64,000 nucleotides of DNA from Epithemia pelagica (lineage: Eukaryota > Protista > Bacillariophyta): assembly GCA_946965045.2 (NCBI GenBank), contig OX337232.1, positions 124,001 through 188,000 of the forward strand, given 5' to 3'. Under the pieces are notes generated by a model. The model was given only the letters and a program-made list of their open reading frames with translations. It searched no databases and was not told the DNA's origin. Every line of letters starts with the position of its first letter. The stretch's first letter is position 1. Shown in pieces: positions 29,381 through 47,917 of this stretch. A program made the translations under genes and the position numbers.

Positions 29381-32300
29381 TGATTCAAGCACACCCGGAA
29401 ACACCACTCACAGACCACATGGACGACGAGTTCTTCCGCAAACACAACATGCACGTTTGCCTTCAATGCAACAAACCATCGACAATATACACCTCCGCCG
29501 CACACTTACGGAACCACAGAGAGAATAAACATACTACGACCGACAACAATCTTGACATAGTCCTGAAAACGTACCGCCATGCCTCCGAACACGTCAAAAC
29601 CAACTGGAAACAGGGGCTGGCCTTCCTCCACCGTCTACAGCCATCACCGCCCCCCTTTCGCCGATCAACATGGCACCGCCTCAAACACCCACAGCGCAAG
29701 GAATACTTCGTAACCTACAACAATGTCGTCACCTGGGTCCTTGAAGCCACAACACCCCTCGGAGAATCCATCGTCCGGGACACACAACCACACCCCTCCC
29801 TCATCGACTCGGCCCCCTTTTGGAAGCTCCTTCTCCTGCTCGAGCCACTCCTTCTCGGGCCCATCCAACACACCCAACACAGAAAACACTCGGCCGCCAT
29901 CAGAGAACGCGTCAACCTCCTCAAAGAAGGCCGCCTCCAGGAACTCCACGAAATGGTGTGGAACCCACCCACACAACCACCCCCAAAACACCGAAAGAAG
30001 AAAACCCACAGACGACACAACAACAACAACACAATCGACCCATCTCGGATCAAGGCAGCCCAACAAGCCGCCGACGTCGGCAACTACTCAACAGCATTCT
30101 CCCGTCTCACCACACACATGCCAACCGCCAAACTCACCCCAGCCCGAGTCGCAACCATCCAGAAAGAACTCTTCCCACCAAGACGAGACCCACCACCACT
30201 GACAAGAACTCGGGGATGCCGCCCAGTGCCCCCTCCCACCGACCAATTTCTCAAACTCAGCCCCAACTTGTTCGAACTTTCCCTCCGAATGATGAAACCG
30301 GGCACCGCCTCTGGGCCCTACGCCACCAGCACAGACGCCATCGTGACCATGGCGCTACACCGAACCGCCAGGACTCCCAACGCCACCCGGCCCTATTTCC
30401 GCAACCTCCAAGACCTGTTCCAACTTCTCGTCACGGCACAGCTTCCTCCATCCGTCCACCCCCTCCTCTCCAGCAACTATTTCCTTGCCCTCCACAAGGA
30501 TCCCGCCAAGCCCGAGAAACTACGGCCCATCGGCATCGGAACTGCCCTCAGGCGCATCGCGGCCAAGACCGCCCTCCTGCACTGCACCGACGACATCCGT
30601 CCCCTCCTCCTCCAGGCCGGCCAATACGGGATACAGATCCCAGGCGGCATCGATTTTGTGGCACACACCACAACCAACCACGTACAACAATACATCACCG
30701 AACCGTCTACCCCTACCCGAGCCCTCGTCCTCTTAGACTTGCACAATATGTTTAATAACACTTCGCGCACGGCGGCGCGAAAACTCCTCCTCGACCACCA
30801 AGCAACCCGACCCCTGGTGCCCCTCTACGACCTTCTCACCCAATCACCAACCCCATCCTGGTACTTTGACGACAACGACACGGCCGCACGATTCACGCAG
30901 CAAGAAGGCTTCCCTCAGGGCTGCCCCCTGAGCCCCCTCTTCTCCTGCCTCGTCCTCCGAGCACTCACGACCCGCCTCAACGAAGAACAACACCAACGAG
31001 CACGACAAAGAAAACACAACGGACAACTCCTTGACGACGGTCAGGGTGGCCTTGCCCACACAGCGTCCATCATGGACGACACCTCGGTGTGTTTGCCACA
31101 CGCCGACCTTCCATGGTTCCTCAGGAGACTCGAAGAACTCGGTGCCCCACTGGGCATACGCCTCAACAAAGGCAAAACCCACATCCTCTCCACAACCAGC
31201 GGCTCCTCTCCATCCACCTCCCTTAGTCCCAACGACAAGAAAAGCCTATACGAAGCACTCGTCTTCCTCGACCCCAACAACCCAGACGACCGCGAGATCA
31301 CGGGAGGAACCCGCTTCCTCGGCCAACCAGTGGGATCACCCTCCTTTGCCCGACACTTCCTCCACCTGCGCCTCCAAACCATGGCAGCGCACATCGACCT
31401 CCTCGAAAACCTACCGGACCTCCAAACTAGAAGCCACCTCTTCCGCTACTCCCTCATCCCTTCACTGACACACCTCCTCGCTGCCGACATTGCCCTCGCC
31501 CACCCAGACCCCGACTCGACAACCACCATTTGGCAGAGCCCCGTCACCAACGAGACACTCCGGTTGATTGCCACTTTCCTTTCCCACGTCACCACCCTTC
31601 CACCCACGGATATCACCACCATGGCCATCACCATCGCGGCCCTTCCAAACCGCCTAGGTGGCATCGGCTACCACAACCCCACCGCCATCGCCCGACCTTC
31701 CCTCATCACACAAACAGCACGATCCATCCGCCTTGCATCCTCAACCGAACAACCAATCCCGCCCATGCACCGGGACACTTTTGTCCACTGGCACGACAGC
31801 GAACGCCCATGGTTCCAGGCCTTCCGTAGGAGTATCGCCCTCTTCGCACACGAACAGGCCCCACCCTTCCTCACCGACCCAGCCCGCTTCGACCAAACAA
31901 CTCACCGCCAGCTGGTCCACCACACCACCATCGAACACGTCCTCCCCGCCCTGATCCAAGCCACCCCGCCAGAACTCCGTGCCTCGTTGCCTTCGACACT
32001 CTCACCGCTCACGAGTCTTGCCCTGCACCTCCCTCGGACGGCAGAAGCGTTCCGAATGGACAACGCCATCTTCCGCACGGCCCTCCGCCGCAAGCTCCGC
32101 CTCCCAGTACTCCCCCCACACCTTTGCTCCAACTGCATCTGCCCCGCCAGCCCCCACTTGGACCCCGAAGGCGACCATCTCTTCTCTTGTACCGCCGCAC
32201 CCAAAACGGCCTTGTCCAATGCCATCCGGGACACCACCTTTGACCTTCTCCAACACCTAGCTCCCAGGGCCGGCCTCACCGAGGACCACTTCGGCGTCCA

Positions 32301-33130
32301 CTTGGAACCCCCGGGGCTAGCGCCACAACACTCACGTAACATCCGCCCGGCGGATGTCGGTCTCCTCCTTGCCCCGCCACACGACAACGAGCCTTTCCAC
32401 TACGTGGCTCTGGATATTACCGTCCCTCCCCCTCACTCTCGCGATCCTCTTCCTGACCCGGCCGACCACAACGCCCTTGCACTCGCTGCCTCAAGACCGC
32501 ATCAGGAATCCGCCAGAGCGAAGTTCTGCCGAGACGACGACACCGCTTCCCACCTCCTCAGCAATGGAATCTACCTCTTGCCCTTCACTGTGGACCACCT
32601 CGGATCCCTGGGCTCCTTTGCCCACAACCTCTTGTTCCACCCCGACGACAATCCGCACCCGTTCTCCTCTGCTCTTCCCCCGACATGGGAAGATCCACAC
32701 TTCGGTCGCAACTCTGCCCGAAGCAAGTCCCATCCTGCTGCCTTTTCCCTTTATCGCGAACTCTCCCACCTGCCACGGAACATCACCGCAAAAGCAACCT
32801 CACGTACTCCTGGATTCAAATACCCAGAAGCCCACATCGCTTCCATCGGACACTTCGCACGGGCATCGTTGGCCCATTCCATCGTCTCGTCCCTTGCCAC
32901 TCATCTCAACAAACAGATATCCATCCTGCAGAACAGAGAATTCGTCGGCCGGATGAAAAAAAACTCAGCGCGAACGCTTAGCCACCCCAGGATTTGCCCC
33001 ACAACTGCCACTTTACACACCGTTCACACTAGCACAATTCTTCACATCACTTCCCACATCACCCCACCAGCTAAGTGGCCCTGCCGCTTAGCCACACACC
33101 ACACACCGTAGAACACCATAAAATAACATA
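29381..33130 (+). mobile_element. CRE-like (R2-group, REL-endonuclease) non-LTR retrotransposon
   Basis: Absent from the homologous empty site in block B (56484-56530). Single ORF with RT and restriction-like endonuclease. Ends are approximate because both junctions are A/C-rich. Confidence 0.8.
29419..33111 (+). CDS. Non-LTR polyprotein: C2H2 finger, reverse transcriptase, Zn-knuckle, REL endonuclease
   Basis: CLQC...HLRNHRENKH; KLRPIGIGTALRRIAAK; LDLHNMFN; GFPQGCPLSPLF; SIMDD; RLNKGKT; RFLGQPVG; CICP...DPEGDHLFSC; RPADV...ALDITV. Confidence 0.9.
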   Translation: MDDEFFRKHNMHVCLQCNKPSTIYTSAAHLRNHRENKHTTTDNNLDIVLKTYRHASEHVKTNWKQGLAFLHRLQPSPPPFRRSTWHRLKHPQRKEYFVTYNNVVTWVLEATTPLGESIVRDTQPHPSLIDSAPFWKLLLLLEPLLLGPIQHTQHRKHSAAIRERVNLLKEGRLQELHEMVWNPPTQPPPKHRKKKTHRRHNNNNTIDPSRIKAAQQAADVGNYSTAFSRLTTHMPTAKLTPARVATIQKELFPPRRDPPPLTRTRGCRPVPPPTDQFLKLSPNLFELSLRMMKPGTASGPYATSTDAIVTMALHRTARTPNATRPYFRNLQDLFQLLVTAQLPPSVHPLLSSNYFLALHKDPAKPEKLRPIGIGTALRRIAAKTALLHCTDDIRPLLLQAGQYGIQIPGGIDFVAHTTTNHVQQYITEPSTPTRALVLLDLHNMFNNTSRTAARKLLLDHQATRPLVPLYDLLTQSPTPSWYFDDNDTAARFTQQEGFPQGCPLSPLFSCLVLRALTTRLNEEQHQRARQRKHNGQLLDDGQGGLAHTASIMDDTSVCLPHADLPWFLRRLEELGAPLGIRLNKGKTHILSTTSGSSPSTSLSPNDKKSLYEALVFLDPNNPDDREITGGTRFLGQPVGSPSFARHFLHLRLQTMAAHIDLLENLPDLQTRSHLFRYSLIPSLTHLLAADIALAHPDPDSTTTIWQSPVTNETLRLIATFLSHVTTLPPTDITTMAITIAALPNRLGGIGYHNPTAIARPSLITQTARSIRLASSTEQPIPPMHRDTFVHWHDSERPWFQAFRRSIALFAHEQAPPFLTDPARFDQTTHRQLVHHTTIEHVLPALIQATPPELRASLPSTLSPLTSLALHLPRTAEAFRMDNAIFRTALRRKLRLPVLPPHLCSNCICPASPHLDPEGDHLFSCTAAPKTALSNAIRDTTFDLLQHLAPRAGLTEDHFGVHLEPPGLAPQHSRNIRPADVGLLLAPPHDNEPFHYVALDITVPPPHSRDPLPDPADHNALALAASRPHQESARAKFCRDDDTASHLLSNGIYLLPFTVDHLGSLGSFAHNLLFHPDDNPHPFSSALPPTWEDPHFGRNSARSKSHPAAFSLYRELSHLPRNITAKATSRTPGFKYPEAHIASIGHFARASLAHSIVSSLATHLNKQISILQNREFVGRMKKNSARTLSHPRICPTTATLHTVHTSTILHITSHITPPAKWPCRLATHHTP

Positions 33131-36226: not shown

Positions 36227-39200
36227 ATGCGCATCCAAAACTCCAGCAGCAGCACCCGCAAGACCAACAACAGCAGCATGGTTCCCCAACAAGCACACGT
36301 CAATGGTCGCAATCCCAAAGCGAACAACAACAACAAGACAGTAAGAGGAAACCACCAGAACCAACGGCAGCACATTGGGACGTTACGAAAACGACCCACA
36401 CCAACACGACGATCTTCCGTGTGGTTCTCACGGTTCACACGCATTCTGCACTCCATGTATTCCACCACTCCCCAAACCAATCACCACAACAAGTCGTGTC
36501 GTCGCTTGTTGGAGCCCGCACAAGTCAATGCCTATTTTCCCAGTGCTTGTCTCTGGGCGATTGGCACGTGGCTCTGTTTGTTGGCCATGGCCTATGGCGT
36601 GACACCGCAATCGGAGTGGACCTATTTGCAAGACTGGGATCGGGTCATTTCCCTGTGGGCCAGTGTCGTGTTGACCAGTAGTTTGATTTCGCTCTGCATG
36701 CCCTTTGTCAATTTTTTGCGAGCCGGACAAGGCCGGCAACGGCCCAGTGGCATTTTGTGGGTGGCCATGACCACTCTCCTCATTTCGATTGGGACCAACT
36801 TGTTGCTCGCCCTGGCGCCCACCATTGTCCGCCGCGATCCTCTCCTACACTCCAAAGTCTTTATTGTCCGATGGTGTGAATGGATTCCCCTGTCCGGGCT
36901 GTTGACATTCTTGTCAGATGCCGTCGACATGGCGCAAGACGAGGAGGACGAGGAACGAAACGACGACAACGACCATGACGAAACTCGTGTGCCAGCCTCT
37001 CCGTGTCGCGTCCCATCCTCATCATCATCATCATCTTCTTCTGCTGCGGCGACGCGTTTGTCGTCCTGGCTTCCCCCCTTGCCCAGTTTGGTCCATGCCA
37101 GCAGTCAAGTCTTGAGCACCTCGTGTGGACTGCTGTTTCCCTATTGTCCCAACACGGCCACCTGGTGCTTGTTGCAAGGCGTGTCGTGGGCCTTGTACGT
37201 GCCCCTCTTTTGTCTCGTGGAACAAAAACGACAAGCCCTCTTGCAAGTGGTCGTCTTGAATCGAAGCAGCAAACCTCAACACGGTCGTGCCAAATTACCG
37301 AATGCGACCAACGACGACTGGCAGACGAAGGAATATGTGCCCGATTCCAGTTCCTATTTGGAAAAGGAGGCCTACGATCGACGATACTTTGCCTATCATT
37401 TGTTGCGACAATGTTCCATTGTTTGGACCTGTCTCGTGGGATTGTACTATGCTCATGCCCTGTGGAGTTTGTGGATTCATCATGCTTCGACCAAAGAGGA
37501 GGAGGAGGCCTCGTTCGATTGGACCACTTCCAATACCACAACGTGTGCCAATTCCACGGGCGACTATCATCTCCATCACAACGATGAGGAATGGATGCAG
37601 GACATCACCACCAACAACAACAACATGGAGGAGGACATGCCTGTTCCACTCAAAGTCTGGAATGCGATATGGACTCGCGTCGTTCAGGTGGTCCAACACC
37701 AACGGCAGCAACAGCAAAAAGAAGAAGATTCCCCAGCCATGGCCTGGCTCCAGTCCAATGAAACCACCTGTCATTCGTGGACACAACAACCAGAACCGCA
37801 ACCCGACCGCGACGACACGGACGGCGATTGGTTCCAGACCTTTTGGCAGCAGCATCACGAATCCTTGGCCATGTGGGCCGATACAGCCTTTGATGTCTTG
37901 GCCAAATGGCTCTATCTCAAGGTTGTCGTGGAAGTCCATGACAAGGTCTTTGATTCCAATGCCCGTGACAAGTGTCAATTGTTTGAATTGCGACGACTCA
38001 TGCAATTGTTGTGGGATTCCACCACGGATACCATTTTGATTAGCGTGCAAGGTCCCACCTCTACCAGTACCTTTTTGTCCCCCTCTTTTTTGCAATCCTT
38101 TGCGGCCACCAGTCCGGATGGATTGGATCCCTCCACGACGACCACCAGGACGGTGGAAGAGGAAGACGATGACGACGATGAAGATGTGCCACTCTCGTTC
38201 CTGACGGCAGAAGGAGGTTCCTCCAGTAACAACAACAACAACACTGTGAGACGTGCCAGTCACGGCCCCTTGCCAAGTCATGAGTCCGACAGTAGCAACA
38301 GACCTGTTCCACGGTCCATGTCGACCTCCTTGTTGCCGTCTCAATCCTTCTTGTCCTCTACCGCCTCCGATCTGTCGGACCTGGCCAGTCCTTCTCCTCG
38401 AATGCTTCGAAACGGCAACCAAACCACCACACCCAAACAAGTCCACAAGAAGAACCACCATTCCTGGTTGACCTCGCATCGCAACGATACCATGGGAGTG
38501 GTCTTACGAACCTCGAATGCACCCACCCCCTTTTCCATGGGATATACTGGACGATTGAATCGTACCGAAACACTGGCCACCGGATCCTCTTCGTCCTCGG
38601 ATTCCTCGAATGCGTCCTCCTCGTCCGGTTTGGTCTATCCTCCCCTCCAAGTCTTGGATGCGCAATACATTGATTCCAGTCACATTAGTTCCACGGCCGC
38701 CTTGGAAAAACTCACCATTGCCACCATGGATCGCGATTCCCCCGAAGTCCAATTGGCCACCGAACTCATTCAAGCCTGTTGGACCAATTTGCACGAACGA
38801 CAACATGAACCACAAGACTATCACAAGGAGGAGGATTCCATGGATCGAGAAGACGAACAAGATGAGAATGATGAATCCTTCCTCAAGGATGACAATCACA
38901 ACAGCACTGGTCCACAGTCACGCAATACCTCCTTTTTGTTGGTTCACGAGTTTCAACGACCTCACAATTCCAAGGATCACCGCACGGACCATCATCCTTC
39001 CTCCTTGCGCGATGATATCACGGACGCGAGCAATCACGATCGGAATTTGTGTTCGTGCGAACTCAAAATTTCGCAAAAATCCCCCGAATCCTTTGTGGCC
39101 ATTGTCCGGGATGTCACGGAACGGTATCGTCGATTTGCCGCCGAACGGGCCCATGCCGAAAACTTGGCTCGACAAAAGGATGCCCAAACGGCCAATCGAT

Positions 39201-41243
39201 TTACCCGTCATGAAATCAAAAATGGCTTGCTTTCCGGCATTGAATTGTGCGACAGTCTTCAACGATCCTTGGAACGTGCCACTGCGCCAGCTTCCTTGAC
39301 ATCCGTCACCGCCACGGACACAACGGCCGAAGGACCAGCAGCACCAACACCGACCGATGCACTGGCCTTGTCGCCAGCCTTGAACAAAATGGCCGGCCTG
39401 ATTGGACAAGTCGATCGAGTCTTTCAGGAAATTCTGGATACGGTCTTGGCCGATGGTACGTGCATTGTGAAGTAGTAGACTGATGTAGATGCATCGGTCT
39501 AGGCGACATATTCCCCCATACAACGTCATTGCTTCACTTTCTAACCCTTGTCCATTGAATCTCTGGATCTCGCCCTTTATTACAGCCATGGCACGCGATG
39601 TAGTCCACGAATGCTACGAACCCCATCCCCAAAAGACGGATTTGGTCGAAGTCTTCAAGGCCTCTTGTTCTCGCATTGGGGAACAACGGTTTCCTTTGCA
39701 AATGTCACCTCAAGGATTCCCCAAGTTGTTGTTGGATGCCCAATTGTTGCGCTTCATTCATCGAAATGCCGTGTCCAATGCCAACAAGTACGGCCGGCGA
39801 GGCGGTATCATCTCGACCCATGTGGACTATGACGATGCTCCGGACAAGCAAATGTTGACCATCAAGGTGATCAATGAACCGGGTCCGGGACATGAAACAC
39901 TCCTGATAGATGCCGAAGAAAGCAGTCGTTCTGTCTTCAAGGCTGGTCGACGACTCCGCAATGCCATTGATACCAATTCCGCCATTGGAGTGTCCTCCAA
40001 CAGTCGATTCCACCCGGACCATGATTCCCAAAACAATTCATCCATTAACGGAAGTAGCAATTTATCTTCGGGAGACGGTGCCTGGATTATGCAAAAATGT
40101 GCCAAAAACATGGGTGGAGTATGCTCCATTACCTTTGAGCCGGAACGAACCGTGTTTGAATTTTGCTGTCACGCCGCACCCGTCTTGGATCGGCCCTCTG
40201 ACACCAGCAAGGCACAGGGGTTCTTTTTGCCGCTCAACACGTGGGCCTTGGGCATTGACGATTCCTGGATCCAACGCAAACTCTTGTTGCGCATTTTTGC
40301 CAATGCCGGCATTCATGCCACACGCAAAAAGGTGATTGGTCGCAGTTTGGAGGAACTCGATTCGACCGCGCGGGTCTTGACGGAATTTTTGCACGACGAT
40401 CCGTCGGCCAAGTGTTTGGTCTTGGTGGATGAGAATTTGGATTATGTCACGGACGAGATTGGGACCAGTCGAGTGATTCGATCGGGTTCGAAAATGATGG
40501 AATCCATTTTGAATGCCTTGCCCGTGTCACAACGGAATCGCATCTTGACGCTGGTCCGATCGGCCAATGACTCGGCTCAAGATGTCATGGTCTATCGGGA
40601 ACGAACGCATGGATTCTTCCCCAAAATGGCAACCCGACGCGACGATGTCATGGAATTGTTGGAATCGGCCTGGAAAAAACGGTTTGGAGGAGATGACCAG
40701 CAACCCTTGGAGGTGGCCAGGACGGCACCGACGGTACTGTCATCCAGTTCACAGCAATCCTCACCAACCGATTCTGGCACCAACAATGAAAACAACAACA
40801 ACAACAACAACAATATCACGCATAGTTCCTCCTCACCAACCGCTTCTGGTACCAACACCGATACCAACAGCAACAACATCACGCAGAATCCAAACCCTAG
40901 AATGAACCCAACCACGACATGTACAACGCGGTTGGAAGGTTCGGAACGGGATACCTCCGAGACGGATGATTCCTATTGCGTGTCCAAGGATGACTTGCGA
41001 GAAGCCGTGTCTTCGGTGGATTCCTTAATGGAACGGCGATCGACCTGTCATGTTCCCTGGTCCCACATTTGGAGTTCCTTGCATTCGCTCAAGGGTGATC
41101 TCATGACGTCCGATCAAGCCGAATTGCAATGGGCCTCGGCGGAAATCTCCAAACTCCAGGGACCCAGCATGCCCGACAATCTCCATGATCAATGGTCTCA
41201 ACTGCTACGACCCGCTATTTTCAAGGGCATTGATTCCTTTTAG
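36227..41243 (+). CDS. Rhodopsin-like hybrid histidine kinase (7TM - PAS-like - HisKA - HATPase - REC - Hpt-like), 2 exons, 1628 aa
   Basis: Exons 36227-39455 and 39586-41243 (intron GTACGT..TACAG, phase 1, giving LAD-A-MARD). RWCEW 36869; DVLAK 37892; VRDVTER; HEIKN 39209; NAVSNANKYG; SSGDGAWI; IDDS...VDENLD (D 40428)...FFPK; LHSLKG 41082. The start codon is uncertain. Confidence 0.85.
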
Positions 41244-42247
41244 CAAAAAAACGACGGAGGATCCACACGCCCACATGGCACCACCCAAGCTTGGGGTGAC
41301 GTACGGTTCACTTTCCTTGTTTCTCTTGTTCACTCTCTATTGTACCCACCAGGGAACATATATACTCAATTTTTCATCTTGTACAATCTCGGCAGCTTCT
41401 ACATACACTCCTATACTACTAATACTCTCATGGCTAAAACGCGAATTGCTTGTGTTTATCCATGGATAGCAGTGGCATTGCTGGATGCAAACACCCGCAC
41501 CACCAAACATGCAGATACAATATACATGCCATCAAACTGTTGCGTGTCTAGAGGTAGATGCAACCGTTCTTGTGGAGATGCCATTGTTCTTGTGGATCCA
41601 ACGACCCCCCGGCATGTGTACACTCATCTGCTGTCGTCGTCCTGTTGTTCGTGTTCGTGGCCGTGACGAGACGTTCCAAACACAAGAGACTGGTACACTC
41701 GGCTTGCGCGCAAGAGCATGCCGATCACGATCACGACCAACATTCTACATCTGTCACAGACCGGCAAGACCAAAAGCATTTCGATAGTTGACACTGCGAC
41801 AGTCGAAGATTGCCCAAAATCTTTTTGGATTGTGGACATCTATATACGTCCTAGCGGTGATGAGAACTCTAAAATTCCAGATAGATATCTCACGACCAGA
41901 TTCTAAACCTGCTTGGGGGTAGATATCCGTTGTCCATCTTCCATCTCCCATTGTGTGGTCGGCAGGTGTCCTGCATGCCAAAAAGGGACCAAAGAAGCAT
42001 TGCCACCAGACAACTGAAACACCTAAAAGAGAAGAATCAACCATTGACCTTTCACAGAACAACTGTTAAGATACGCGCAATCTAAACGCTGTGTGTTTTC
42101 TACTCCTATTTCCGTCACAATAACATGAGGATACAGCTAGCTCATAGGCAACATAGCGCGCTGAAACAACAAATAATACACTCTTGTGGACTATGTCATT
42201 ACATTATAAAACTCTTTTTCACCTTTCTCCTAGAACTCTTATCATTC

Positions 42248-42865
42248 TCAGGATGCATACTGACGCAGATATTTCACAAAGGTGGTGACATCTTGAGCAC
42301 CAGAAAAGGCCGGCTCTCCTTCGAATTCAAAAAAGGGGACTCCATGAATACCCCGTTGATGCGCTTGAGCTGCTTCGTCATGGACCAGACGACGCAATTC
42401 CTGTACCTTTTCTGGATTGGCAAAGAAATCTTGTACTTCGGTGCTTACACCCGCCTGCTCGGCACAGTGCAACAAACCCGTTTGGTCCGGGAAGATGCCC
42501 CGCGTAAAGTAGGCATCAAAGACAGCTTCATGAAAGGCTGTTTGCTGTAGGTGACCATCCAAATAATGCATCGTGGCATGAAAAAGAGAGGTATTGGGTG
42601 TGCGATCCGTCAGTCCAGTAAAGTCAATGCCGGTCAATTCACCGGCCAGTTTCAAGCGCGATCCGACACGCGATGCCGGGGTCCCTCCCTTGGGAATGCC
42701 CTCCTCCGGTGCTTCTGGACGTAACATGAAGGGCTTCCAAGATATCTGGGTCTCGATATTGGCTACCTGGGAAGCTTCTTGGAGTTTGCGAAGTCCTATG
42801 TAGCACCAAGGGCACATGAGGTCACTGGTGATGGCAACAGAGACTGCTTTCGTAATCGGAGCCAT
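42248..42865 (-). CDS. DSBA-like thioredoxin-fold oxidoreductase (FrnE type)
   Basis: ITSDLMCPWCYIG active site; WKPFMLRP; GIHGVPFF; FSGAQD. Confidence 0.9.
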   Translation of the reverse strand: MAPITKAVSVAITSDLMCPWCYIGLRKLQEASQVANIETQISWKPFMLRPEAPEEGIPKGGTPASRVGSRLKLAGELTGIDFTGLTDRTPNTSLFHATMHYLDGHLQQTAFHEAVFDAYFTRGIFPDQTGLLHCAEQAGVSTEVQDFFANPEKVQELRRLVHDEAAQAHQRGIHGVPFFEFEGEPAFSGAQDVTTFVKYLRQYAS

Positions 42866-43921: not shown

Positions 43922-46900
43922 TTACCATCCTTGTATACTCTCGCGATGTTTCTCGAACGATGATTCGTTGAGAGATTTAGTGAAGATATCCGCGGTCTGA
44001 TCGTCTGTCGCGCACGGGTGAATCTCAATCTCTTTTCGTTCCACGAAAGATTTAAAATGGAACAACTTGGTGCACAGATACCGTGTCCTGGGTCTGTACT
44101 TGTATATTGTTGCGAGTTCGACTGCACCACTGTTATCTTCGAAGGCCTTGCAGTGTATATTGGGTGTCGTAGAGAGAATAGGGAATCCCAAATCCTTCAT
44201 CTCACGAGTGATGGCCATCAACGGAATGACAGTACGTAGTGCGTGTGACAAACTTATGATCTCTGCTTCTGTGGTTGATAAGGCTATCTCTGACTGCAGT
44301 TTTGATTGCCAGAGGATGGGGCAACCTGCATAGAAGACCACAAATCCCGTTCGAGACCGAGCCATATCCTTGTTTGGGTGGTCGAGCTTGTTAAAATTGC
44401 CTGCAAAGTCCGCGTCGGCGTACACTTGGAAAGATTTCGTGGTGTCGGGTTTTAGTATCACTCCTTGCTTTCTTGTCCCGGCGAGGTAACGTGCTATGTG
44501 TTTGACGGCTTTCCCATGAATTGCTTTTGGGTTTTCGCAAAATCTGGCGCATTGGTGGACGGCGAAACTAATATCTGGTCTCGTGCTCTTTTCCAGGAAG
44601 TTGAGTTTCCCGATCGCCGACCTGTAATGGAAATGGTGATCAAATGCTTTTCCGTCTTGGTCCTGTCTCAAGCGTACTGTGGTTGGTGCCGGTGTTTCTT
44701 TCTTCTTGGTTGATTCGTCGGCAAGGTGAAGATCTTGGAGGATTGAGTCAATTAAATGTGGTTGAGTCAAGTGGATGGTGCCATCCTCTTTTCTGTCGAT
44801 GTTGACCCCAAGAAAATCGTTGACTCCGTCTTCATAGGTCATCTTCAGACCACTATTCTCCATTGTAACAATCAACCGGTCGAGTTCTTCTTTGTCAGGA
44901 CCCAACAATAAGGAATCGTCCGTATACAAAATGTATACGCATTTACCATGATAAAAGAGGCACTCGTCGTGTGCACTTTGTTGGAAACCGACTTGCTTGA
45001 GTCGTTCCACGAGGTGTTGATTCCATACTCGGGCACCCTGCTTCTGCCCATAGTAATTTTGCTTGATCTTGAGGACGTAGTCTTCTGCTCGCTGGTTTCC
45101 TTTTGTATCGAATGTGAAGCTTTTCGGCGCTTCCATATACATATCAGTCTCGGCGACTGCTTGAGTATATGCCAGCACACAATCTACCTGTTTGATGTGC
45201 CATCCTTGTGTGAGTGCCATAGTCAGGATGAATCTCACGACGGGCCATTGAATCACGGGAGCGTAGGTTTCCCAATAGTTAACCCCCTTTTCTTGCATGG
45301 ACCCATCATATGCCAATCTGGATTTCCATTTGTAGACTTCTCTAGTTTTTAGTCTTCTCTTTCGGACGCAACTCCACACTCCTCGAGAGATTAGCGCTCC
45401 TTTCGGAATGTCCTTTCGCTTGACCACCTCCCATAGCCCATTATCGCTATGATCTTGTACTTCTTTCTGTGCTGCCTTTATGAATTCCGCTCGATCCTCT
45501 TGTTTCATCGCTTCATGCCAGTACATAACATCTGGATTGCTGTTAGCTTGAGCGGTATTGACTGTCACAGTTGGTTTAGCTGTGATAGCTACTTCTCCGA
45601 TCGCGTCTTCGGGCTCTTGGAGCGAAGTCAAGTAGTCTTGATATCGTTGTGTTCGACGAGGAGTACGTTGGGACCGCCTAGCTCCCTCATGCTCTGGCAT
45701 AGTTTCTCGTTCTTCCATTGGCGGGTTAGCATCGTTAGTTTGGTCCCTGTCTTCGGGTATCGTAACGTCGGTCTCACGTCGGGGTGACGTCGTTGTACTT
45801 CCGAATTCCACGCGTGGTTGATTCTCCCTCATGCGTGGTCTGGATTTTGTGAACCCTGCCTTATACTGCCATTGAGATATTGGTTGGGCCTCTCCAAAAC
45901 TTTTGCGTATGGTTTCAAATTGGTCATCGTATTGAACATGAAATTGAGGTGACGTCAATCCGGAAGAAAGGGATAAGATAAGCCCGATTGTCCTTGCATG
46001 TTGAGGAGAATAGCCCAAGAAAATGCCAACTCGAGCTCGTTCGGACCATTTGGGAATTGGAGTTCCGCTTTGTAATTCGTTGTCGAGTACGTATGCTGGG
46101 CATCCGAATGTATGTGCGAGTCGTGTATTGAATCTTACCGTTGAACCTGTAAATAGTTCCATTGGCGTCTTTTCCTTGTGTTTCTTCATTGGTGCCTCAT
46201 TGAACATGTCGTTGGCATAGCGGACTGCATAGGGCCATAAGTTCGTCGTCACTGTACTACGCCAGCGTCGTTGGGCGTGTATTAGCATTGTTCTTCCTGA
46301 TTCTTGTAGTTCTCTAATACGTCGTTCGGCCATGCCACTTTGAAAGTGAGCATTAACTCCACTGAAAGTTAATCGTTGATTCTTCATTTGTACTGCTTCC
46401 CGTAATTTATTGTCGGCAAAGATGCCGTTATCGGCGTGATAATGTCGGATCTTGACTCCGTGAGTGTCTGCCCAAGCTTCAAACCGTTCTTTAGCTTCGA
46501 TCGTGTCTTTTGCTGATGTACTCCGTTGAAGGTGTACATAGCCTACCCCTGAGAAGTGGTCGACGAAAACCGTAGCCACCCTATATCTGTCCCGTGTGGG
46601 AGTCCCACGTAGATGCGCAATGTAACCCGGAGTCTTTGATATCATTTGGTCGACTGATACACATTGACCCGGTGACGTCATGGTATCTAGTGTTCCACGA
46701 TGACCTTTAATTCGCCAGGGACGTCGCGTAGCTTTCCCGTACATACACGCCGTACAGACCGGGACCTTACAGTTTGCAAGTCGCTTTGGGAGTCCTCCTT
46801 CTCGTGCAAGGCTTTGGATTTTCGCCATCGACAGGTGACCCATTCTATGATGCGTTCGGAGTAACTCTAGCGTTGGACTTGCGGGGAGTACCTCTTCTTC

Positions 46901-47917
46901 ATTAGGAATCACATGTACGGTATCGCTGGGGTCTATGAGGAACTCGGTAGTCATCGGTACATCTCTTGTTGGAAAATAATGTTCATTTTGTTCGTCGTCG
47001 AGATTCTTGTGATTTTCGTCGATACTCCAATCGTCTCCCTCATCTTGGTCCATTGTTGATGGAGACCGTTCCATGACGGATTTGTCGTCGTCTTCAATGA
47101 GGTTTGCGTTGTTGACCAGCAAGGGCTTGTTGTCCTCTTGATGGATTGTCGTGCCTGCCTTTTTGCAAAACGCTTCGTATTTTGTGTATCCTGGGGCAGT
47201 CGTAAACTCACCCACATTTGAACCTCGTTGTTTCAATGGAATCGTCCGTTTGAAGAGTCCTTGCCCCCAAATCAATTCGATAGCGTTGCTATATGTCACG
47301 CATCGTGTTCCTCTCGGCAAGGGTTTGATATCTTTTGCTGTTTGTGCCCAATGTTGGGGCGAAAGCAGTTTGGTTGGAGTCGATGGGATGTAGAAGGACC
47401 TTGGGAGCGTGATCGTATGGATCTTGCCGTCGTCGTCCTCGATATCCCATCGTATCGTCGTCTCGTATATATCTGGTTGATATGTTCCTGCTACTCCCTT
47501 GACCTTTCGTTTGATTTTGATTGGTTTGGTGCAGCAGTCTTGTATGTCGTTCGTAATTGACGCGGTTGCGCAATTGTCAATCAAGACTTTCCTGCTGTCG
47601 GTATCAAAGCCAACTTCGTGAGCCGCTCGGTGAGTAACTTGTCCAGTTGTCGAAGTCAGTATCGTTGCCATGCATAATGCCCGGAGGAGTCCTGTATAGT
47701 TAGTTCTCCGTCGTCTCCGGCCATGGTCGATTCTTCGTTTCTTCTTCACTTTGATTTTGGTCGCGAGAGAGGTCGCTATGGAGTCGCATAGCCCTTGGAC
47801 GTAGTCTAGGACTGACTCCAGGTGGTAGCACCTAGGACACCATAGCCCGTAGCACAGCATAGTGTAACTTGATAAAAGGATCGTCACTAATACTGTGTAA
47901 ACGAGCTGCTTGATCAT
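43922..47917 (-). CDS. pol: Copia pol (protease, GAG-pre-integrase, integrase, RT, RNase H), element 1
   Basis: VLIDNCAT; HHRMGH...CTAC; VSVDQ, HADNG, AERRIRE; YAPV, QVD, YGQKQ, LYTDD; YADADFAG, EAEI, EDN, ADIFTK. In frame with gag across the single TGA at 47954-56. Confidence 0.93.
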   Translation of the reverse strand: MIKQLVYTVLVTILLSSYTMLCYGLWCPRCYHLESVLDYVQGLCDSIATSLATKIKVKKKRRIDHGRRRRRTNYTGLLRALCMATILTSTTGQVTHRAAHEVGFDTDSRKVLIDNCATASITNDIQDCCTKPIKIKRKVKGVAGTYQPDIYETTIRWDIEDDDGKIHTITLPRSFYIPSTPTKLLSPQHWAQTAKDIKPLPRGTRCVTYSNAIELIWGQGLFKRTIPLKQRGSNVGEFTTAPGYTKYEAFCKKAGTTIHQEDNKPLLVNNANLIEDDDKSVMERSPSTMDQDEGDDWSIDENHKNLDDEQNEHYFPTRDVPMTTEFLIDPSDTVHVIPNEEEVLPASPTLELLRTHHRMGHLSMAKIQSLAREGGLPKRLANCKVPVCTACMYGKATRRPWRIKGHRGTLDTMTSPGQCVSVDQMISKTPGYIAHLRGTPTRDRYRVATVFVDHFSGVGYVHLQRSTSAKDTIEAKERFEAWADTHGVKIRHYHADNGIFADNKLREAVQMKNQRLTFSGVNAHFQSGMAERRIRELQESGRTMLIHAQRRWRSTVTTNLWPYAVRYANDMFNEAPMKKHKEKTPMELFTGSTVRFNTRLAHTFGCPAYVLDNELQSGTPIPKWSERARVGIFLGYSPQHARTIGLILSLSSGLTSPQFHVQYDDQFETIRKSFGEAQPISQWQYKAGFTKSRPRMRENQPRVEFGSTTTSPRRETDVTIPEDRDQTNDANPPMEERETMPEHEGARRSQRTPRRTQRYQDYLTSLQEPEDAIGEVAITAKPTVTVNTAQANSNPDVMYWHEAMKQEDRAEFIKAAQKEVQDHSDNGLWEVVKRKDIPKGALISRGVWSCVRKRRLKTREVYKWKSRLAYDGSMQEKGVNYWETYAPVIQWPVVRFILTMALTQGWHIKQVDCVLAYTQAVAETDMYMEAPKSFTFDTKGNQRAEDYVLKIKQNYYGQKQGARVWNQHLVERLKQVGFQQSAHDECLFYHGKCVYILYTDDSLLLGPDKEELDRLIVTMENSGLKMTYEDGVNDFLGVNIDRKEDGTIHLTQPHLIDSILQDLHLADESTKKKETPAPTTVRLRQDQDGKAFDHHFHYRSAIGKLNFLEKSTRPDISFAVHQCARFCENPKAIHGKAVKHIARYLAGTRKQGVILKPDTTKSFQVYADADFAGNFNKLDHPNKDMARSRTGFVVFYAGCPILWQSKLQSEIALSTTEAEIISLSHALRTVIPLMAITREMKDLGFPILSTTPNIHCKAFEDNSGAVELATIYKYRPRTRYLCTKLFHFKSFVERKEIEIHPCATDDQTADIFTKSLNESSFEKHRESIQGW

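Follow-up and report, generated by a model that had tools for sequence, protein, structure and literature searches.

All characterised enzyme rhodopsins, including the 2c-Cyclops that contain a histidine kinase (HK), have eight transmembrane (TM) helices and cytosolic termini as their hallmark (PMC8006352). In Chlamydomonas HKR1/Cop5 and Cr2c-Cyclop1/Cop6 and in Ostreococcus Ot-HKR, an 8-TM opsin, a DHp domain, a CA domain and a response-regulator domain follow one another in a single chain (PMC8006352, PMC12558739), and light is inhibitory in the case of Cr2c-Cyclop1 (PMC8006352). In recent reviews, histidine kinase rhodopsins (HKRs) are listed for no group but the green algae (PMC12558739). 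A rhodopsin-type diatom kinase also goes unmentioned in a survey of eukaryotic histidine kinases whose species included the diatom Fistulifera solaris (PMC6324907), and a metatranscriptome study that used a rhodopsin hidden Markov model (HMM) recorded zero rhodopsin-histidine kinase transcripts (PMC8017926). The same order of opsin, DHp, CA and response-regulator domains was recognised in a gene of the diatom Epithemia pelagica, located on the forward strand at positions 36227-41243 of a 64,000-nucleotide stretch of contig OX337232.1, hereafter the window. The green-algal HKRs/2c-Cyclops end in a guanylyl cyclase, whereas the diatom protein, in which neither Pfam nor the C-terminal model gave a cyclase domain, has an HPt-like end instead. 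With a probability of about 75%, the locus encodes an 8-TM retinal enzyme rhodopsin fused to a divergent hybrid histidine kinase with a receiver (REC) and a probable histidine phosphotransfer (HPt) domain, and the protein would serve as a sensor, not as a pump.

Word-index searches yielded two relatives from Epithemia clementina, namely an orthologue (P0002) and a compact paralogue (P0003; 1006 aa, short loops). The template-free AlphaFold model of P0003:1-335 (pLDDT 93.5, pTM 0.88) revealed eight TM helices. Between the third and the fourth lies a beta hairpin that corresponds to the bacteriorhodopsin (BR) B-C loop, and helix G extends as a long cytosolic helix (helix 293-314), followed by two beta strands at the edge of the model. 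The preliminary description of this locus had counted seven hydrophobic segments; the model adds an N-terminal helix, TM0, which makes the helix that carries the RWCEW motif the fourth. The model was matched to rhodopsins by both Foldseek and VIA, with a superposable seven-helix bundle, and the VIA alignment to Rh-PDE began at model residue 5 and took in TM0 and the linker. Since the model comprises TM0 and helices A-G, the domain displays the 8-TM hallmark of enzyme rhodopsins, and a further trait of that group, HK modules fused through a helical linker, could be seen in the passage of helix G into helix 293-314.

Profile searches against the PDB (177,635 sequences) pointed the same way. A profile of the TM domains of 66 family members matched microbial rhodopsins only, with Rh-PDE (7cj3, E 4.8e-5; 7d7q) and bestrhodopsin (7pl9, E 4.7e-4) at the top and cruxrhodopsin, ChRmine and others, all of them rhodopsins, among the further matches. 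The full-length family profile returned the same top matches (Rh-PDE 6.7e-6, bestrhodopsin 7pl9 7.8e-5). When the profile was narrowed to helices E-G, the matches were non-significant (E 1.3-10), yet all four were rhodopsins with the lysine aligned, placed on the DVLAK/DIVAK lysines of xanthorhodopsin, 7w74 and ChRmine. The rhodopsin fold named in the preliminary description is thus borne out by the eight-helix model of the paralogue and by profile matches solely to microbial rhodopsins. The nearest solved relatives are Rh-PDE and bestrhodopsin. Rh-PDE of Salpingoeca rosetta differs in having a phosphodiesterase and not a kinase as its output, and its structure-based identity is 11-13%; in bestrhodopsin, a tandem rhodopsin is joined to a bestrophin channel instead of an enzyme.

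With P0003:1-335 as the query, an exhaustive phmmer search gave 355 cluster representatives at E<1e-3, 111 of which lay below 1e-30. The named members came from Epithemia clementina, Fistulifera solaris (FisN_19Hh075), Mayamaea pseudoterrestris, Entomoneis/Amphiprora (MMETSP0727), Cylindrotheca fusiformis and the radial centric Corethron hystrix (A0A7S1FW96), and were annotated as hypothetical, uncharacterised or 'signal transduction histidine kinase'. Zero non-diatom taxa occurred among them, and the word-index searches for named relatives likewise returned diatoms only; Phaeodactylum and Thalassiosira were missing from the named members, which does not demonstrate their lack of the gene. A metagenomic member, P0209 (666 aa), carries the tail of a class-III cyclase-like domain and a PDEase_I domain (PF00233), both N-terminal to the 8-TM rhodopsin, and retains RWCEW and the helix-G lysine. 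Its architecture suggests that the diatom-type rhodopsin is coupled to cyclic-nucleotide enzymes too. Conservation was counted over 66 aligned TM domains, over 25 members for the H-box and CA, over 20 for the HPt histidine, and over 17 for the C-terminal Pfam searches.

The residues of the chromophore site are largely kept in the family. Residue numbers are counted from the ATG at 36227 (M1). When the window protein was aligned to P0003 and P0002, R215, E218, W219, W400, D556 and K560 all fell on conserved columns. The position of the BR Schiff-base lysine, K216, is Lys in 66/66 members and is among only three invariant columns of the domain. The equivalents of R82 and W182 are each retained as Arg and Trp in 65/66, D212 is Asp or Glu in 64/66, Gly at G122 and Trp at W138 are each found in 62/66, W86 is Trp in 61/66, and the D85 position is Glu in 59/66. 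The family lysine was aligned on known Schiff-base lysines (bestrhodopsin DVVMK, xanthorhodopsin DVLAK, ChRmine DIVAK), and the family profile placed RWCEW on RYAEW of Rh-PDE. By homology, K560 would point into the retinal pocket. The three motifs picked out beforehand, RWCEW, the helix-F tryptophan and FDVLAKW with its lysine codon, were recovered at the same coordinates, and their key residues are invariant or nearly invariant in the family.

Helix C does not resemble that of a pump. Because the D96 position is Leu, Met or Phe and the T89 position is Leu in the family alignment, the family has no pump-type proton donor. The non-pumping character that had been read earlier from helix C of the single sequence (Glu at D85, Leu at T89, Leu/Met for D96) therefore agrees with the family as a whole. 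With a Glu counterion, Leu and Val in place of Tyr185 and Pro186, and Met at the Leu93 position, the pocket may have unusual photochemistry; the W189 position is mostly Tyr or Phe.

The output module could be identified by its conserved boxes. The His, Glu, Asn and Gly of the H-box are invariant in 25/25 members, and so are N150, N154, F205, G228 and G230 of the CA boxes (P0003:470-740 numbering). Among PDB histidine kinase domains, the family profile matched the CA of YycG (1.6e-4) and the DHp and CA of HprS (5.7e-4), and the Pfam HATPase_c model came in below its cutoff (E 0.0027 for the window protein, 2.5e-5 for the paralogue). Going by these boxes, the kinase is real but divergent. The earlier assignment of the HEIKN H-box, the N and G boxes and the receiver holds at the same coordinates, with the correction that the kinase has diverged and that the G1-box Asp has become Asn. 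In the receiver, the residues DD, D, S and K are invariant or nearly so, and the REC fold was supported by structure, despite a non-significant sequence profile.

The C-terminal domain is a probable HPt. Four helices with pLDDT >90 were predicted, and a comparison by hhalign with five Escherichia coli HPt domains gave P 0.023, with the histidine aligned on ArcB H717. This histidine was present in 16/20 members. The Pfam Hpt model was sub-threshold in 4/17 members (best 0.008; P0002 0.074) and did not match the window sequence. DUF7032, a domain of unknown function on which a literature search found nothing, matched the HPt-like region in 10/17 members (best E 1.4e-6). A fold search with the C-terminal model returned only REC-containing clusters, the list being filled by REC matches.

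The order HK-REC-HPt in one chain is also that of the E. coli unorthodox kinases ArcB, BarA, EvgS and TorS, and the family motif LHxLKGD lies on the HxxKG of ArcB H717. The diatom protein differs from them in its rhodopsin sensor, in its eukaryotic host and in an HPt homology that is only suggestive at that P value. Eukaryotic HPt proteins are usually separate. Bacteriorhodopsin and sensory rhodopsin II with its HtrII/CheA pathway are different again: the archaeal kinase is a protein of its own, to which a transducer leads, whereas the diatom kinase is covalently fused to its opsin, and this opsin contains eight helices. Unlike what is expected of a close relative of the green-algal HKRs, none of the rhodopsin, HisKA and REC parts reaches its Pfam threshold, a sign that the lineage may be separate and deeply diverged.

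Several observations weigh against a light-sensing kinase. On the sensor side, Pfam Bac_rhodopsin (PF01036) gave no match to the window protein or its two closest relatives at E<=1 and matched just 2/66 members (best E 6.5e-4), and a phmmer search of PDB sequences was blank for the window TM region, with nothing meaningful for exon 2. The nearest neighbours in a language-model feature search (ESM-Atlas) were generic bacterial membrane sensors of the MHYT, MASE and ETR1_N types (0.78-0.83), which were dismissed as chance; an Atlas shape search with the rhodopsin model gave TM scores all <0.36, which is noise. Taken by themselves, the single-sequence results would suggest an ordinary multi-pass sensor kinase. 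Moreover, the rhodopsin model is that of the paralogue P0003, about 49-72% identical to the window protein across the helices, and the direction of the lysine side chain is taken from homology. Two classical pocket residues are changed, BR Y185 to Leu and P186 to Val. Retinal production by this diatom was not evidenced in the analysis, and inspection of the neighbouring genes revealed no retinal-synthesis gene near the locus. On the output side, an invariant Asn takes the place of the G1-box Asp ([VI]-N-x-P-G-x-G), so that ATP binding is not assured, and neither REC nor HPt was significant by sequence, whether by profiles against the PDB or by Pfam. The Pfam scan proposed as a check in the preliminary description (Bac_rhodopsin, HisKA, HATPase_c, Response_reg, Hpt) yielded just the sub-threshold HATPase_c for the window protein, and HisKA, REC and Hpt had no match in the window ORFs or the two closest relatives. 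In terms of its alignments, the protein is a remote homologue that lies outside Pfam Bac_rhodopsin as currently drawn.

The best-surviving alternative is a rhodopsin fold that has lost retinal, like opsin-related proteins in which the fold outlives the chromophore, and that would serve the kinase as a membrane sensor of the chemo, lipid or voltage type. The failure of Pfam to recognise the domain, the Leu/Val pair at the Y185/P186 positions and the lack of a nearby retinal-synthesis gene would all fit such a sensor, and its big extracellular and cytosolic loop inserts could serve as ligand or partner sites. Opsin relatives without a chromophore typically lose the helix-G lysine, whereas here this residue is invariant across centric and pennate diatoms, and the equivalents of R82, D85 (as Glu), D212, W86, W138 and W182 are kept too, a combination that is hard to explain without a protonated Schiff base. 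We therefore regard a retinal-free sensor as unlikely. It is also improbable that a true retinal rhodopsin is joined to a pseudokinase or scaffold that passes on the light signal through protein-protein contacts. The invariant Asn of G1, which comes with one additional residue ahead of the glycines, would agree with a dead kinase, as would the absent HisKA and Response_reg matches, the sub-threshold HATPase_c and the loss of the HPt histidine in 4/20 members; on the other hand, the H-box residues, both N-box Asn, the F-box Phe and the G2 glycines are invariant in 25/25 and the receiver residues nearly so, a pattern needed for catalysis and not for scaffolding. That the motifs are a chance likeness in an ordinary multi-pass sensor of the MASE, MHYT or 7TMR-DISM-like kind, as the bacterial language-model neighbours and the blank single-sequence searches might indicate, is hardly credible, being refuted by a PDB profile that found rhodopsins only and by the Foldseek and VIA rhodopsin matches.

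For the retinal enzyme rhodopsin with its fused kinase, the following mechanism can be proposed. The sensor would be an eight-helix type-1 rhodopsin with a cytosolic N-terminus, in which retinal would be bound most likely via K560, with R215, E218 and D556 as the counterion complex. The absence of a proton-donor residue would make it a sensor instead of a pump. Isomerisation of retinal would shift helices F and G, and the helix-G extension with the helical linker would carry this movement to the DHp dimer and alter autophosphorylation. The phosphoryl group could then pass from H995 via D1358 and H1576 to a response regulator outside this protein. Of the retinal-binding enzyme-rhodopsin sensor put forward in the preliminary description, the analysis establishes the rhodopsin fold of the family, the conserved chromophore site, the kinase motifs with the REC fold and the gene structure, while we infer retinal binding, light control with its sign, kinase activity and HPt function.

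Diatoms account for a large part of primary production in the sea, and light sensing in them has been attributed to cryptochromes, aureochromes, phytochromes and proton-pumping rhodopsins. The gene stands out as a strong candidate for a light sensor of a new class in diatoms. If this is true, the known photoreceptors of diatoms would be joined by a sensory one based on retinal, a class that the present list does not contain. A sensory rhodopsin wired to a two-component phosphorelay would add an input channel that links light to His-Asp signalling in stramenopiles, and it could be the missing green-light sensor because microbial rhodopsins typically absorb green. We lean towards regarding the family as a previously unrecognised diatom-wide clade of eight-helix enzyme rhodopsins, reaching from the centric Corethron to raphid pennates and possessing its own divergent HK-REC-HPt phosphorelay. 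A literature search of incomplete coverage found no account of a histidine-kinase rhodopsin in diatoms, so that prior publication is possible. The family escapes Pfam annotation, and therefore surveys built on rhodopsin HMMs, such as that of PMC8017926, would miss it. As a deep enzyme-rhodopsin branch, the family would help to explain the coupling of 8-TM rhodopsins to various enzymes. New optogenetic kinases may also be drawn from it, and for expression the compact paralogue with its short loops appears well suited.

Table 1. Coordinates of the features of the rhodopsin-kinase gene (positions in the window)
Feature	Position	Strand	Basis
Exon 1: N-terminal low-complexity tail, 8-TM rhodopsin domain, linker and PAS-like region, first DHp half	36227..39455	+	ORF list, splice donor
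Intron, inside the DHp-coding region	39456..39585	+	Sequence, orthologue junction, spliced contigs
Exon 2: second DHp helix, CA, receiver, disordered linker, HPt-like four-helix bundle, stop codon	39586..41243	+	
8-TM microbial-rhodopsin domain, aa 97-575, TM0 and helices A-G	36515..37951	+	Alignment to P0003, AlphaFold model, Foldseek/VIA, PDB profile
Helix C RWCEW: R215 = BR R82, E218 = D85 (candidate counterion), W219 = W86	36869..36883	+	Family conservation; aligned to mRYaEW of Rh-PDE
Helix F W400, BR W182 position	37424..37426	+	W in 65/66; within model helix 212-251
Helix G DVLAK: D556 = BR D212, K560 candidate Schiff-base Lys (codon 37904-37906)	37892..37906	+	Family conservation, alignments
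Helical linker from helix G, then a poorly defined (possibly PAS-like) region, Ser/Thr/Asn-rich inserts and a final conserved CELK...VAIVRDVTERYRRF block	37955..39121	+	Model, conservation
H-box RFTRHEIKNGL, H995 (39209-39211) candidate autophosphorylation site	39197..39229	+	Conservation; profile matches DHp+CA of HprS
CA (HATPase_c) domain	39750..40181	+	Pfam sub-threshold, family profile, box conservation
N box: N1137, N1141	39765-7 and 39777-9, within CA	+	
Atypical G1 box VINEPGPGH	39867-39893	+	
G2 box SSGDGAW (F box also present in CA)	40065-40085	+	
Receiver (REC): DD1301/1302, candidate phospho-acceptor D1358 (40428-40430), S1402, K1423	40224..40688	+	
C-terminal HPt-like four-helix bundle, LHSLKGD, H1576 (41082-41084)	40986..41240	+	Model; Pfam sub-threshold; hhalign suggestive

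The gene consists of two exons that, after splicing, encode a product of 1628 aa with no internal stop. The range is not one ORF: the long forward-strand ORFs 36227-39475 and 39489-41243 sit in different frames and are joined across a phase 1 GT-AG intron of 130 nt (Table 1), with the donor G/GTACGT at 39456 and the acceptor TTATTACAG/ closing at 39585. The protein junction ...LDTVLAD-A-MARDVVHE is identical residue by residue to that of the annotated orthologue P0002. In the public run X2, one contig lacks precisely the 130 nt of the intron, with GT..AG ends, and splicing is also seen in a second, allelic contig; the spliced joint was absent from three other public runs of the same study. Translation could start at M1 (36227), M18 (36278) or M77 (36455). 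A joint from 36279 to 38224 in runs X3 and X4 was rejected as a low-complexity repeat artefact, with a shorter side of 20 nt and non-canonical ends.

Three long low-complexity inserts lie in the loops of the window protein, in C-D (aa 236-283), E-F (336-373) and F-G (413-545). Unspliced contigs of run X2 cover 36288-36967, 37057-37402, 37442-39276 and 39942-41500; they run through the low-complexity stretches, which are therefore coding and not introns. Hidden in-frame introns in the long loops were thus ruled out by the first three of these contigs, and were also countered by the comparable inserts kept in the Epithemia orthologue. The F-G loop (37463-37861), predicted to be extracellular, comprises 133 aa, among which Trp, Thr, Gln and acidic residues are abundant; it has two Cys and three N-x-S/T sequons. 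At this site the orthologue carries a different insert and the paralogue none.

Helices F and G and the linker are the best conserved parts of the protein, with about 90% identity to the orthologue and 59-72% to the paralogue, which fits a signalling role for them as judged from the alignment. In the region that follows the linker, PAS_9 or PAS_4 was matched at just E 0.07-0.08 in 3/25 members, and the linker/PAS profile had no match in the PDB; the identity of the VRDVTER motif as 'PAC-like' is accordingly unconfirmed. Between REC and HPt, the linker (40689-40976) is a disordered tract rich in Asn, Thr and Ser.

Upstream of the gene, a reverse-transcriptase ORF lies at 29419-33111 on the forward strand (1230 aa, RVT_1 E 3e-8). 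The region 30000-33000 stands out from the remainder of the window, with a GC content of 59-63% and a GC skew that is very strongly negative (-0.37 to -0.43). Further downstream, a copia-type retrotransposon polyprotein ORF of 1331 aa with RVT_2, gag_pre-integrase and retroviral SH3-like domains is found at 43922-47917 on the reverse strand. Immediately downstream of the rhodopsin-kinase gene is an intact gene for a DSBA-like thioredoxin-fold protein, also on the reverse strand (42248-42865, 205 aa, PF01323 E 6e-29).

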